Positions 52,970 to 57,229 of a DNA stretch of 64,000 nt are shown piece after piece (within the stretch, counting starts at the first letter, position 1; every line of letters begins with the position of its first letter). Made by a program: the position numbers and the translations under genes. Below the pieces are notes generated by a model. It was not told where the DNA came from and made no database searches. It saw only the letters and a program-made list of their open reading frames with translations. The stretch is from Paramoeba atlantica (Eukaryota > Protista > Discosea): contig CDRNVI010000012.1 in the NCBI GenBank assembly GCA_977017575.1, positions 496,001-560,000 of the forward strand, written 5' to 3'.

Positions 52970-53119
52970 ACTGCCGTCATTTTGACCATACCGACCCCTA
53001 TGCGCATCATAGCTAAAAAATACAGGAAAAAGTAGGTGTTTTTTTCATAATTTAAAAAAATCCATTTGTTCTAATTTTTCAGAGCTTTTTTCTTTATAAA
53101 TGGTTTCTCATTCCCCCAG

Positions 53120-53188
53120 CTAGCCTCGTACCCCGCGGCGGTACCAGTCTTGTACTGCCGCCTGTACAATCTGGGCATTGCCTTTCTC
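53120..53188 (-). pseudogene. 5'-truncated relic of a sibling RLE retroelement (last 23 codons)
   Basis: Translates EKGNAQIVQAAVQDWYRRGVRG*, versus QKGNAQIAHAAVQNWYRRGVR* at the end of ORF 53523..56948. Confidence 0.9.
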
Positions 53189-53492: not shown

Positions 53493-56400
53493 TTTTTTTT
53501 TGTTTGTCCGCCCCCGAGCCCATTAGCGCACGCCCCTACGGTACCAGTTTTGTACCGCGGCATGCGCTATCTGGGCGTTCCCCTTTTGGATGGCTACCCC
53601 GATTGCCATGATGAAGTGGCTGAGGCAACCATTCTTCTCGCCGGTGGCCTTCCGAGCGACCAGATTTAGAAACTGGAGGGTCTCGGGTCCGGGGACACCG
53701 TACGTGGTGAAGGCCAAGGGGAAGAAATCCATCTCCCTGTCCCCCGTCATTTCCTCGTGAGTGCGCCTTTTGAGACGCTCTGCCTGCCTCACGGTGAAGG
53801 AGGGATCAGCAGCCTCCTTATCTACGTAGGACGGGGCCAGTGGGTTTACCACCGTCGCGTCCACTAGGACTAGCTTCCGCCCCAAAAGGAAACAAATGTC
53901 CGGTCCCCGACCGTTATCGAATCTAGGTTCGACGAGGTCTGGGGAGAATCCGTACTGGATTAATAGGTTGCGGAAAGTTTCCTTGACCCCCTTGTGGCGA
54001 GAGGCTTGTGTCTTTCCCCGAACCTTCTTACAATCCATGGCGTGGACGCAGAACTCCTCATTTTTGAGGGCCGCGCCACACACACATTGGATTTCTGGTT
54101 CGGAGGTGGGGGCCACCATGTACCGGACTCTAGCGGCGGTCTCCCATTCGGGATCCCGCATGTAGTACTCCGGCCTGTTCGGCCACGCATTCATCCACTT
54201 GGTCGAGTGGATGTTCTGGATCTGTCGCATGCAGACCAGATGCGTGGCCGACGGTGCCTTGTCCAAAGCAGCCGCCCCATAGGCGCGTCTTTGCTCCCTG
54301 GCGGGGGTGCCGGGGGACTGGCCTTGTAAGGCCTTGACTGCTTTGGCCTGCATGTCCTCCGCTTTGTCTTCGAAGGGGATGGTGCCCAGGAAGTCCGCCG
54401 TAAAAAGTTTGTTTACGAACGGCGTCGTTCCCATAGCACCCATCCCTCCGATAAGAGCTTCGGAGCATGCGGTGATGGCCGCGTCCACCTGCAGGTTCGC
54501 CTTTTTGGTCACCCCCGGTTCGTGCGTGCAAACTATGTGGTTCCACCGGGGGCTCCCGCATAGGCGGAGGAGAGGGAGGGCGCACTGTCTGGGTAAATCC
54601 TTGAGTTTACCCAGGAAATTAGTGACCTTGGGGACCTTGGAGAGGACCCATTCCTCTTCCCGCGCTTCCGAGGCGCCAATGTACGCCCCCAGAAGTTTCA
54701 GTCCCCCCGGACCGTGTTGCATCCGGCTCCCCGAGAAAGCCGTGTGCAGGCCTGGGTGGCGGGTAGCAACCTTGCACTTGGCCAGCTGTGCCAGGCTGTC
54801 CGGGGAAGGCGTGATGTCACCCTGCTCCGTCACCGCGCCTTGGGTATTGGGGGGCGTGACACTGGGGGCCTTGTAGGGAGGGTCCGTCCCAGCCATATGG
54901 GGGTAAGGCGGCGGAGGGGAGGTGGGGCACTCGCATTCCTGACGGGAGGAGTTACGAGGAGAAGTAGAGGCCGCGATTCCCTCCATGATAGTACCTGCCC
55001 CACCCGGGGTAGGGGTTGTAGCGCCAGGGGTAAGGACATTTTGGGTCTCCCTCCGGGCCCGCCACGTCTTAGAATGAGGACCTGGGTTTGCCTCGATACA
55101 GCCTCTGCGGAGGTTGCATTGAACAACACGGGTGGTCCAGCCCGTTTCGCTTACCAGGGTTTCCGTGGGAAGGAAACAGCAAAGGAGCCCTTCTTCGTAG
55201 TTGCGGGGCTCCCAGGCACCGGTCATGATCCGGGGGATACCCAAGACCTCGTTCAGACCGGCGGGGATGTCGTGCGCCGCACTCACCCCTGGGGCGGAGA
55301 CCATGCCGTGGTGTGTCCCGTCATACACCCTGACTGTGGCTCCATCGCTAGGCCCTGGGGGAAAGGGGGGAAGGGAGAGGCTGACCGCGACTCTTTGCGC
55401 TCTGTCCAGCCCTTCCCAGTCGGTGATGGGGGTGGCTTCGCCGGAGATGTCCTTCGGCAGCAGGCTCTCTCCGGGGACCCCTAACGTGTTGCCCACAATG
55501 CTGATTGTGGCTTGAAACGAGCGTTCGGGCGGGCAGGGGATGACTATGTGACCCACGCGCTCGGGGCCAATGTCGAGGAGGATTTTGAGGACCTCTTCCC
55601 CAGCCGGCTCGTATGGTTTGTCCGGGACTTCCCCACAGGGTGCTCTCGCCTGTATCGGGTACGCGCCCGACCTGTCCGCCAGTGGAACTGGGGGGAAAGG
55701 AGAGGGGGGAGGGAGGAGAGGAGGGAAGTTGGGAATGGGGGGATGAAAGGAGCGTAGGGGGGGCACGGGCCATGGAGGTCCTTTAGCCACTGTGTTGACC
55801 TGGGCCAAGCGCAGGCGGGCTTCCTCGGCGCAGAACCCCTCATAGTACGCCAGCATGGAGGCGTACCGCTCCGTTTTGATCCGGAGGGCTTCAGGGGCAT
55901 GCTCCTTTAGCAGGGCAATAGATGCTTTCCTTAGCCGCTTGGGACCGTGCATCTTTACTAGGTGCGACTGTAGGGCTACATGGTGGGGTTGGGCTACCCC
56001 ACATTCAATGCAGACCAAATGGCCGGCATTGATCAGAAGAAAGCGATCCTCGATGGCTTTCTGGGCCGCGTGCAGACCACTGACAGCCTCCAGGGTCAGC
56101 TCATGGCGTGCCCGGGCCTCCATTTCCTCAAGGGAGATCCTCTCGTGCTCCGAGTGTAGGGTCGAGAGGAGACGCAGAGAGACAGAGCATCTTCTAGTTT
56201 GTGCTAGAGGGAGCCCCGAGCTAGAAGGGGAGGGGAGGAGTTTAAAGCGCACAGCGTCCATCTCCTTGAACTGCTGCGCTAGCGTGGGGAGTTTCGGCGG
56301 ACGCTCCGACGGGGCGGGGGCGTCGCTGTCCATCGCGTCCGACGTGATCGGGGGGGCGGTCGCCAGGCCAGGCGTCGAGATGCGGGAGTATGACGTGTTC

Positions 56401-57090
56401 CGACTGTCGGAGGTAGGGAGGGGAGCGAAGGAAACGTTGGCAGCTTTCCTCAAGATGGGGGTGGGGGCGACCGTAGTACCTGTACGGTCAAAGCTCCGGG
56501 ATCTGTCCCGAGAGGAAGAAGAACGTGGGATCCTGCGGGCTGTGGAGTTGGCTCGGGAGGATCGAGAGGAAGACGTGGAACGGGATGGAGGGGTCCCTGA
56601 GGCTTGCGTCGAGGCACGCACTCTAACGTCGTTCCTGTGCCGAGAGCGCAGAGTAACGCACTCCTCACACAGGCGGTTGTCCCGCCTGGTTGGCACGAAA
56701 GGGAGGCCACAGAAGTCGCAGGCACATGACTTGTGCTGCTCCTTGACACGGACGACCAAGTCCGGCCTCGCCTTCTTCAGCTCCTCGATGGAGAGCTGGC
56801 GCAGCCCCTCGGCCCCTACGGAGGGGTGGGGGCTGGAGCCTCGCCTGAGAGGGGTGGTAGCAAGTCCCCCTGAGGTCGAGGATGATGGGGTGTTAATCCC
56901 AGTATCGGAATCCTTGTATCCCCGGTGGCCACGCCGACGTCTGGTCATGGGCTTGCGCCGGGGAGAGAGAGAGTAGAGGTAGAAAAAGAAAAGGATTCAA
57001 CTTTAGGAATCTCCAAAGCGTTCGGATAAAGTTGGCTTTACAGAAACGGTATCTTTATCGTATGAGTAGTTTTTCTACCTATCCCGTACT
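53493..57090 (-). mobile_element. CRE/SLACS-like RLE-type non-LTR retroelement with internal RT deletion; poly(A) at 53493..53501; 5' boundary uncertain
   Basis: Short 3' UTR then A9; ORF ends with CVCG..CVHAMDC..RH and GPDICF...LVDATV...AERLK (CCHC plus PD-D-K endonuclease). Confidence 0.88.
53523..56948 (-). CDS. 1141-aa retroelement polyprotein: Zn ribbon, C2H2 finger, 2A-like motif, distal RT/thumb remnant, RLE endonuclease
   Basis: CDFC..LCEEC; CIECG..HVALQSHLVKMH; LRRGCIEANPGP; LAKCKV...GLKLLGAYIG; no QG..LS or Y(A/L)DD motif seen. Confidence 0.88.
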   Translation of the reverse strand: MTRRRRGHRGYKDSDTGINTPSSSTSGGLATTPLRRGSSPHPSVGAEGLRQLSIEELKKARPDLVVRVKEQHKSCACDFCGLPFVPTRRDNRLCEECVTLRSRHRNDVRVRASTQASGTPPSRSTSSSRSSRANSTARRIPRSSSSRDRSRSFDRTGTTVAPTPILRKAANVSFAPLPTSDSRNTSYSRISTPGLATAPPITSDAMDSDAPAPSERPPKLPTLAQQFKEMDAVRFKLLPSPSSSGLPLAQTRRCSVSLRLLSTLHSEHERISLEEMEARARHELTLEAVSGLHAAQKAIEDRFLLINAGHLVCIECGVAQPHHVALQSHLVKMHGPKRLRKASIALLKEHAPEALRIKTERYASMLAYYEGFCAEEARLRLAQVNTVAKGPPWPVPPLRSFHPPIPNFPPLLPPPSPFPPVPLADRSGAYPIQARAPCGEVPDKPYEPAGEEVLKILLDIGPERVGHIVIPCPPERSFQATISIVGNTLGVPGESLLPKDISGEATPITDWEGLDRAQRVAVSLSLPPFPPGPSDGATVRVYDGTHHGMVSAPGVSAAHDIPAGLNEVLGIPRIMTGAWEPRNYEEGLLCCFLPTETLVSETGWTTRVVQCNLRRGCIEANPGPHSKTWRARRETQNVLTPGATTPTPGGAGTIMEGIAASTSPRNSSRQECECPTSPPPPYPHMAGTDPPYKAPSVTPPNTQGAVTEQGDITPSPDSLAQLAKCKVATRHPGLHTAFSGSRMQHGPGGLKLLGAYIGASEAREEEWVLSKVPKVTNFLGKLKDLPRQCALPLLRLCGSPRWNHIVCTHEPGVTKKANLQVDAAITACSEALIGGMGAMGTTPFVNKLFTADFLGTIPFEDKAEDMQAKAVKALQGQSPGTPAREQRRAYGAAALDKAPSATHLVCMRQIQNIHSTKWMNAWPNRPEYYMRDPEWETAARVRYMVAPTSEPEIQCVCGAALKNEEFCVHAMDCKKVRGKTQASRHKGVKETFRNLLIQYGFSPDLVEPRFDNGRGPDICFLLGRKLVLVDATVVNPLAPSYVDKEAADPSFTVRQAERLKRRTHEEMTGDREMDFFPLAFTTYGVPGPETLQFLNLVARKATGEKNGCLSHFIMAIGVAIQKGNAQIAHAAVQNWYRRGVR

Positions 57091-57093
57091 AGT

Positions 57094-57105
57094 GTAGTAG
57101 TAGTG

Positions 57106-57136
<31 letters not shown>
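57094..57136. repeat. (GTA)n microsatellite
   Basis: gtagtagtagtggtagtagtagta... about 14 units with one interruption. Confidence 0.95.
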
Positions 57137-57137
<1 letters not shown>

Positions 57138-57229
57138 TTCTTTTGTCAAACCGCTATAAGGTATGGGGTATGATAGAGCACCGACTCGTGGAGTAGGAGG
57201 GCATATTGTAACCCAAGCATGAAGGCGAC

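Follow-up and report, generated by a model that had tools for sequence, protein, structure and literature searches.

Several described groups of non-LTR retrotransposons invite comparison with the locus analysed here. CRE, SLACS and CZAR are RLE-type elements of trypanosomatids that are inserted site-specifically inside spliced-leader RNA genes, while RIME and ingi form a non-autonomous/autonomous non-LTR pair of trypanosomes. NARTc and L1Tc are another pair from trypanosomes, and L1Tc also carries a 2A sequence (PMC5814959). Short internally deleted R2/R1 and CR1 elements have been described as SIDEs (PMC3414825, PMC6740152).

The 64-kb stretch of DNA that was analysed, hereafter the window, contains a copy from an RLE-type (R2-like) non-LTR retrotransposon family, of which it is a deletion derivative. 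In sequence, a copy from a sister subfamily is matched best by R2 proteins, which are also the best fold match of the C-terminal part of the window copy.

Architecture of the window copy

The window copy carries an uninterrupted ORF of 1141 codons with its ATG at 56948 and its TAA at 53525–53523, and in 2000 shufflings of its letters the frame was never free of stops; the fully open retroelement ORF described in the earlier note was borne out and located on the minus strand. From the N- to the C-terminus, the ORF holds putative zinc fingers, a 2A-like motif, a linker, a thumb, a CCHC knuckle and a PD-D-K nuclease, with the RT core missing. The features, in window positions, are as follows:

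53493..57001, minus strand: whole retroelement copy, 3.5 kb; 5′ end and A-run 3′ end common to siblings, flanks unlike
56949..57001, minus strand: 5′ UTR, 53 nt, pyrimidine-rich, from the sequence
53523..56948, minus strand: ORF of 1141 codons, stop at 53523–53525, from translation
56658..56726, minus strand: Cys-rich zinc-ribbon-like stretch, CxCxxC...CxxC, residues 75–97, from translation; no significant Pfam match
55947..56012, minus strand: putative C2H2-type zinc finger, C-x2-C-x12-H-x4-H, residues 313–334, from translation; kept in siblings
55077..55112, minus strand: 2A/StopGo-like motif LRRGCIEANPGP, residues 613–624; the same in six siblings
54786..55076, minus strand: Pro/Ser/Thr-rich linker, about 97 residues; precedes the RT in intact relatives
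54783..54785, minus strand: deletion junction within codon 722 (CT|G); in every sibling the alignments of the two flanks join at 54784
54189..54782, minus strand: last palm strands and helical thumb/linker, residues 723–920, from an AlphaFold2 model and an R2 alignment over about 430–476 columns
54030..54086, minus strand: CCHC zinc knuckle, C955/C957/H969/C973; (nearly) invariant columns among relatives
53679..53999, minus strand: restriction-like PD-(D/E)xK endonuclease, R984/H985/D1017/D1030/K1060; (nearly) invariant columns
53493..53522, minus strand: 3′ UTR of about 21 nt and an A9 run, from the sequence
53112..53188, minus strand: 76-bp relic of a sister-subfamily element (its 3′ end), 96% identical to L015:4347-4422

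The relic lies 300 bp downstream and is separate from the window copy. The expected length of intact relatives is about 4.76 kb, against 3.5 kb for the window copy. The 5′ end (GTTGAATCC...) is common to the siblings and the window copy, and the 3′ ends likewise lie in an A-run, while the flanks differ. The first four nucleotides of the 5′ UTR (GTTG) are the last four of the genome's spliced-leader-like sequence (...GTTTCTGTACCTTGTTG), which directly precedes element 5′ ends elsewhere in the genome, and copy C30a retains 8 nt of it at its 5′ end. The poly(A) tail claimed earlier amounts in the window copy to only a nine-A run about 25 nt past the stop codon; siblings end similarly, in A8–A20. 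These 3′ runs, together with copies retaining only the 3′ 0.7–0.96 kb, are hallmarks of target-primed reverse transcription. Inspection of the printed flanks by eye showed neither a clear target-site duplication nor a common target sequence, and an Rfam scan of the window returned no family. The ORF lies inside a same-strand host gene cluster (G3PDH, CLC channel, CDP-diglyceride synthase) and is therefore probably co-transcribed.

In the N-terminal part, the C2H2-type finger had weak Pfam matches only (zf_C2H2_ZHX, E 0.05–0.17). A structure model of residues 290–622, preceding the 2A-like motif, had a pLDDT of 36, and leads from the ESM Atlas for the pre-2A part all stayed below threshold (0.82 for C2H2 plus Par3_HAL_N_term). 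The 2A-like motif LRRGCIEANPGP is identical in six sibling copies and differs by one residue (E→G) in the C20 copy; the sister subfamily also has such a motif (CNLRRGCIEANPGP), and the N-terminal sequence downstream in that subfamily cannot be aligned. NPGP (621–624) and LAKCKV lie about 98 residues apart, in agreement with the short spacer noticed earlier. The motifs named in the earlier note are likewise in place: LAKCKV at residues 722–727, LLGAYIG at 752–758, the four CCHC residues, and P1016-D1017, D1030 and K1060 of the nuclease.

The C-terminal module is an R2-type thumb-CCHC-RLE. All CCHC and nuclease residues are retained in the window ORF, as judged from a 31-sequence alignment with relatives at 18–77% identity. 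The AlphaFold2 model of the C-terminal 420 aa had a pLDDT of 89, and the top seven PDB matches in a fold search with it were R2 proteins (probability 1.0), followed by arenavirus cap-snatching endonucleases and Hjc resolvases, which matched weakly (E 0.02 or worse). In phmmer, the same 420 aa found no match among PDB sequences, and R2 was reached only by the fold search and through the RT-bearing sister copy, whose PD...VDVTV aligns with the R2Tg nuclease in HMMER. An exhaustive protein search found 1513 relatives of the module, against only 2 in a word-based search, and RVT_1 lies upstream in six of the seven long relatives scanned from the 1513. A search for other contigs encoding the exact 1141-codon protein gave no record.

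The missing RT core and its relatives

Pfam searches with the whole ORF and with its thirds gave no significant match of any kind and no RVT_1 even at E ≤ 10, and tblastn found no match to the RT core of RT-bearing siblings anywhere in the 64-kb window; both results agree with the earlier observation that no QG/YxDD motif or frameshifted RT lies nearby. Siblings (94–97% nucleotide identity) have, precisely at window 54784, an extra 1254 bp (418 codons), and this stretch contains RVT_1 (Pfam, E 3.7e-21) and YLDD; therefore, the RT core has been deleted in frame, as had been proposed. The lost 1254 bp comprise the RT N-terminal extension and motifs 0–5, ending where motif 6 starts. In the sibling alignments, a natural copy with a frameshift, minus the transposon nested in it, was used only as a coordinate ruler. 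The compared breakpoint sequences share at most 1 bp of microhomology, by which repeat-mediated deletion is ruled out; an intron is ruled out as the cause of the missing stretch by the lack of GT..AG.

The RT with YxDD of an RLE-type (R2-like) non-LTR retrotransposon is present in the siblings and the sister subfamily and absent from the window copy. The sister subfamily, with 77% amino acid identity in the thumb-RLE region, has open frames of 1159–1465 aa with YLDD, PD and VDVTV, and its RT matches RVT_1 (E 5.5e-20). No RT-intact copy of the window element's own subfamily was seen; its siblings carry different deletions that are equally clean. This subfamily has six large deletions, and each of them overlaps the RT core.

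These features suggest a single-ORF R2-like (RLE) non-LTR element in a kinetoplastid-like genome, from which one deletion of 1254 bp removed the whole catalytic RT core, in frame by chance. The deletion may have occurred in the DNA of the inserted element, or else the template may have been jumped intramolecularly while target-primed reverse transcription was under way; the resulting copy is incapable of reverse transcription. If the ORF is translated, as its place in the same-strand gene cluster may suggest, a functional 2A would yield two products, predicted to be a zinc-finger N-terminal protein and a linker-thumb-CCHC-nuclease piece of about 520 residues lacking the polymerase.

One locus on two contigs and the rival explanations

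Among 41 candidates, of which 40 were scored, the junction occurs only in the window contig (C12) and its syntenic partner (C2); the check for recurrence at independent loci thus returned a single locus. C2 is collinear with C12 at 99.3–99.5% identity over about 10 kb, other element pairs stand in the same order on both, and SNPs and indels separate the two contigs at 66 aligned positions across the ~10 kb, with the junction identical. The window/C2 pair is on its own in the tree, with C54 as the nearest copy at a path length of 0.036; no progeny of the RT-less form and no 5′-truncated copy closer than 97% to the window copy were found. Since the split, the window allele has acquired R282H, L422P, R807C and A1068T, three of the four being CpG transitions, and one synonymous change, and the C2 allele a premature stop (Y584*) and one synonymous change. 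These counts, which are small, give no sign of purifying selection after insertion. The private changes of the window copy (21 synonymous, 31 nonsynonymous) resemble those of visibly broken siblings.

The reading that fits best, with a probability of about 0.8, is that of an internally deleted R2-like copy at a single locus that decays neutrally on two homologous contigs, one allele already with a stop codon and the other still open by luck. Several observations count against decay: over 3.4 kb the window allele is free of stops and frameshifts, although its private divergence is about 1.6%, unlike most siblings, which are broken in the N-terminal part; the alleles diverge less in the ORF (7 changes/3426 bp) than in the flanks (about 45 substitutions/6423 bp); and the pooled private-branch ratio, about 0.5, is below neutral. 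The last is expected if the branch was partly spent in an active lineage before insertion.

The earlier note had offered three origins, and of these only a recent deletion fits. One is a derivative that is non-autonomous but supplies endonuclease (a coding 'SIDE') and that RT-competent relatives would mobilise in trans. The retention of both element ends, the A-run and the open frame speaks for it; the sister subfamily, with its open YLDD frames, could supply the RT, and spreading internally deleted R2 derivatives are known (PMC3414825). This origin is nevertheless very unlikely: the junction is confined to one locus on two homologous contigs, no full-length or 5′-truncated copy groups with the window copy, and no RT-intact copy was seen in its own subfamily. 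A similarly slight chance attaches to a domesticated or otherwise functional RT-less protein, for instance a nuclease with site specificity or a regulator acting on the family as a dominant negative. Internally deleted P elements, which encode repressors, offer an analogue for such a regulator, and the fully open ORF with every CCHC and RLE residue, the probable co-transcription with host genes and the lower allele divergence in the ORF would all suit a retained function. Against it stand the nonsense codon at residue 584 in the C2 allele, the 4:1 ratio of nonsynonymous to synonymous changes with three CpG transitions in the window allele, as in neutral decay, and V1031A, a change private to the window copy beside the catalytic D1030; we know of no orthologue. 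Misassembly, in which the assembler would have collapsed out the RT core, is the least probable of the rivals, even though repeats are prone to collapse, because the separately assembled C12 and C2 share the junction despite their SNP and indel differences; moreover, no repeat or microhomology above 1 bp could mislead an assembler there, and siblings show other deletions just as clean.

A more speculative and improbable view would be that the RT-less ORF is expressed from the polycistron and its 2A-freed nuclease half acts on family targets without making cDNA, either inhibiting active relatives trans-dominantly or serving as a nickase. Another would be that the six independent RT-core deletions of this subfamily reflect a real bias rather than chance, because RT-competent copies are selected against or because template switching has a hotspot there. 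Should more genomes show deletions clustered on the RT core, this would point to a mechanism or selective pressure worth testing. The window copy itself is of little import, dead internally deleted non-LTR copies being common and this one showing neither spread nor selection; it is useful as a clean deletion made by nature, marking the boundaries of the RT core in an undescribed R2-like family with both a 2A-like site and spliced-leader heads.

Comparison with known systems

R2 proteins (R2Tg 9nl3/9dou, R2Pm 9nl2, R2Bm 8gh6/8ibw) resemble the window family in their single ORF, N-terminal zinc fingers (putative in the window family) and, as regards the siblings, RT, and resemble the window copy in the helical thumb/linker, CCHC knuckle and C-terminal PD-(D/E)xK nuclease, although identity with the window C-terminal part is only 13–16%. 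Unlike R2, the window family has no rDNA target, its flanks varying among copies; a 2A-like motif divides its ORF, spliced-leader remnants stand at its 5′ ends, and the window copy lacks the RT. In SIDEs, as in the window copy, an internal deletion of a full-length non-LTR element joins 5′ and 3′ parts. However, SIDEs lack coding capacity, are short and occur as many independent insertions, whereas the window copy retains 73% of the coding sequence and its junction occurs at one locus, not at several independent insertion sites. CRE, SLACS and CZAR share with the window family the RLE-type non-LTR organisation, a kinetoplastid-type host and an association with the spliced leader; in the window family, by contrast, independent copies have unrelated sequences on both the 5′ and the 3′ side, unlike insertions into spliced-leader RNA genes, and the leader sequence forms a 5′ head on the copies. 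Finally, RIME/ingi and NARTc/L1Tc parallel the present case as truncated or deleted non-LTR derivatives beside autonomous elements in kinetoplastids, but these are APE-type with high-copy non-autonomous families, whereas the window element is RLE-type and single-copy.

Open reading frame and missing RT core

The ORF listing and its translation give an ORF of 1141 aa with an ATG start and zero internal stops, so that the stop-free 1141 codons described in the earlier note are borne out, on the minus strand. None of 2000 mononucleotide shuffles of the ORF remained open, and the ORF stretch has about 60% G+C vs. about 40–45% in the flanks.

Features of the window copy
57001 to 53493 (-): whole copy
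53 nt preceding the ORF (-): 5′ UTR, pyrimidine-rich
53523..56948 (-): ORF
residues 621–624: NPGP
residues 722–727: LAKCKV
residues 752–758: LLGAYIG
C955, C957, H969, C973: CCHC knuckle
P1016-D1017, D1030, K1060: nuclease residues
after the ORF (-): 3′ UTR of about 21 nt, then an A9 run

LAKCKV, LLGAYIG, CCHC and PD..D..K each lie where they had been placed, while the supposed poly(A) tail is only a 9-A run about 25 nt past the stop codon. The Pfam profile RVT_1, suggested as a check, has no match in the ORF, whole or in thirds, even with E ≤ 10 allowed, and tblastn with RT-bearing relatives as queries finds the RT core nowhere in the 64-kb window.

In a protein search of the genome (45.7 Mb, 248 contigs), other copies match residues 1–724 and 721–1141 separately, with a gap of about 0.9–1.25 kb. 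At the DNA level, both flank alignments meet at window position 54784 in every sibling (same-subfamily copies, 94–97% identity), where the fullest siblings hold 1254–1255 bp (C26:191716–192969, C26:208111–209364 and C59:81011–82265). The 1254-bp stretch encodes the RT N-terminal extension, a PGPSGW motif, KQGDP and YLDD, as far as GLKLNM|AK; RVT_1 scores E 3.7e-21 in the C54 sibling and E 5.5e-20 in a sister-subfamily copy. The proposed in-frame deletion of the RT core is confirmed by this RT-encoding sequence at exactly 54784: the junction falls within codon 722 (CT|G), and 418 codons are lost with the frame preserved. Microhomology at the window breakpoints is at most 1 bp, and these breakpoints do not resemble those of an intron. 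The deletion may have occurred at the DNA level or through a template jump while the element was being reverse-transcribed.

Each of the six large internal deletions detected in the window subfamily reaches into the 1254-bp RT core (only 26% of element length), and none lies wholly outside it; under random placement, the chance of this is roughly estimated at 0.009. A 6-bp microhomology occurs in one deletion only (C30b).

Large internal deletions in the window subfamily
window and its C2 counterpart: 1254 bp
C54:585.7–590k (L013): about 331 bp
C30:347.6–354.6k (L014): 136 bp
C30:266.8–270.5k (L016): 400 bp
C44:306.3–310.8k (L022): 218 bp
C66:67.9–70.1k (L024): 1650 bp

An exhaustive HMMER search with residues 722–1141 yielded 1513 relatives, and RVT_1 lies directly upstream of the matched part in 6/7 long relatives scanned. 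In an alignment of 31 sequences (18–77% identity to the window copy), C957, H969, C973, H985, D1017 and D1030 are invariant and C955, R984 and K1060 nearly so. The confident AlphaFold2 model of the C-terminal part (pLDDT 89.3, pTM 0.88) has R2 retrotransposon proteins as its best seven PDB fold matches (probability 1.00, E 4e-8 to 2e-5), followed by weak hits (E 0.02 or worse) to PD-(D/E)xK nucleases, among them arenavirus cap-snatching endonucleases and Hjc resolvases; R2 proteins are also the best sequence match of an RT-bearing sister copy. Thumb, CCHC knuckle and nuclease are therefore retained, in agreement with the earlier note. V1031A, private to the window copy, adjoins catalytic D1030.

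One locus on two contigs, and related copies

Recurrence of the junction at independent loci, as the earlier note envisaged, was not found: with 40 of 41 candidates scored, a 200-bp junction probe aligns over its full length only in C12, the contig on which the window occupies 496001–560000, and at C2:362403–362602, and all remaining matches end at the junction. Around the element, C2 and C12 are collinear for about 10 kb at 99.3–99.5% identity, other element pairs stand in identical order on both, and near-identical contig pairs are seen for many other element copies; from this collinearity and pairing, the two are read as haplotypes or homeologues. The identical junction on two separately assembled contigs argues against misassembly. 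A maximum-likelihood tree of the 3′ 729 bp places the window and C2 copies together as a pair standing apart from the rest (support 100/99, stem length 0.016), with C54 as the nearest copy (path length 0.036).

No 5′-truncated copy more than 97% identical to the window copy was found, nor any RT-intact copy of its subfamily in the genome. Sister-subfamily copies have open frames of 1159–1465 aa containing YLDD, PD and VDVTV, which suggests that a trans-acting RT may exist; no sign was found that it acted on the window copy.

In the sister copy at L015:17–4411 (C12:830k), the N-terminal region after the 2A contains tandem repeats with a unit of about 49 residues, and head-to-tail behind this copy, separated by poly(A) plus a leader-like sequence, lies a second open frame longer than 1050 aa with YLDD and PDI motifs (L015:4848–8000). 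The C26/C59 siblings carry, nested in their N-terminal part, a 2.6-kb DNA transposon of the PIF/Harbinger type (DDE_Tnp_4, E 6.8e-10; L017:2305–4921, also L018 and L019); C26 has this locus at two positions separated by 16.4 kb, and C59 has it once.

Selection and decay

Between the two alleles, the ORF shows 7 differences, vs. about 45 substitutions and a few indels across 6.4 kb of flanking sequence. Polarisation against siblings assigns R282H, L422P, R807C, A1068T and a single synonymous change to the window allele, and Y584* plus a single synonymous change to the C2 allele; the total of 5 protein-altering vs. 2 silent changes agrees with the neutral prediction, the numbers being small. Of the changes found only in the window/C2 lineage, 8 are synonymous and 8 nonsynonymous in the C-terminal part, and 13 and 23 in the N-terminal part, ratios resembling those in visibly broken siblings. 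Thumb–RLE dN/dS across the family is 0.08 at depth and 0.2–0.3 among close copies, and such a pattern is the usual mark of selection in active lineages with post-insertion decay.

The C-terminal part is without stops in 6/7 copies compared, and the N-terminal part is open also in copy C30a; partial openness is thus common among siblings. The window copy is best read as an element with an internal deletion that sits at one locus and decays neutrally, whose frame is still open because the deletion size is by chance divisible by three, the sequence is G+C-rich and the copy is fairly young.

Surroundings, target and comparison with known elements

The 2A-like motif CNLRRGCIEANPGP is kept in siblings, with a single E-to-G change in the C20 copy, and is present too in the sister subfamily, where the adjoining N-terminal sequence is unalignable. 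A 76-bp relic of a sister-subfamily 3′ end (53112–53188, (-); 96% identity to L015:4347–4422) lies 300 bp downstream of the A-run, and an (ACT)n microsatellite (57105–57150, (-)) about 100 nt upstream of the 5′ end. Just downstream, same-strand host genes for glycerol-3-phosphate dehydrogenase, a CLC channel and CDP-diglyceride synthase belong to a long same-strand series of intronless ORFs, a kinetoplastid-style organisation.

A 23-nt spliced-leader-like sequence, ACGATAAAGATACAGTTTCTGTA, then CCTTGTTG, occurs at 634 dispersed genomic sites, and includes GTTTCTGTA, the conserved core of kinetoplastid spliced leaders; the label "kinetoplastid-like" for this genome rests on gene organisation and this sequence. 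It is often sandwiched between a poly(A) run immediately before and a retroelement 5′ end immediately after (e.g., L015:4460), and its last 4 nt, GTTG, are the window family's first bases. A variant with a different continuation, AAGCCAAC..., lies at 57039–57061 (-), 40 nt upstream of the element.

The window copy works like and belongs with RLE-type (R2-like) non-LTR elements. Siblings share the element ends; because their flanking sequences are unrelated despite these common ends, no common target is seen, and targeting is thus unlike that of CRE/SLACS/CZAR. Among published elements, the deletion is most closely paralleled by SIDEs, derived from R2/R1 (PMC3414825) and from CR1 (PMC6740152). 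SIDEs are short, non-coding and multi-copy; the window copy is none of these.
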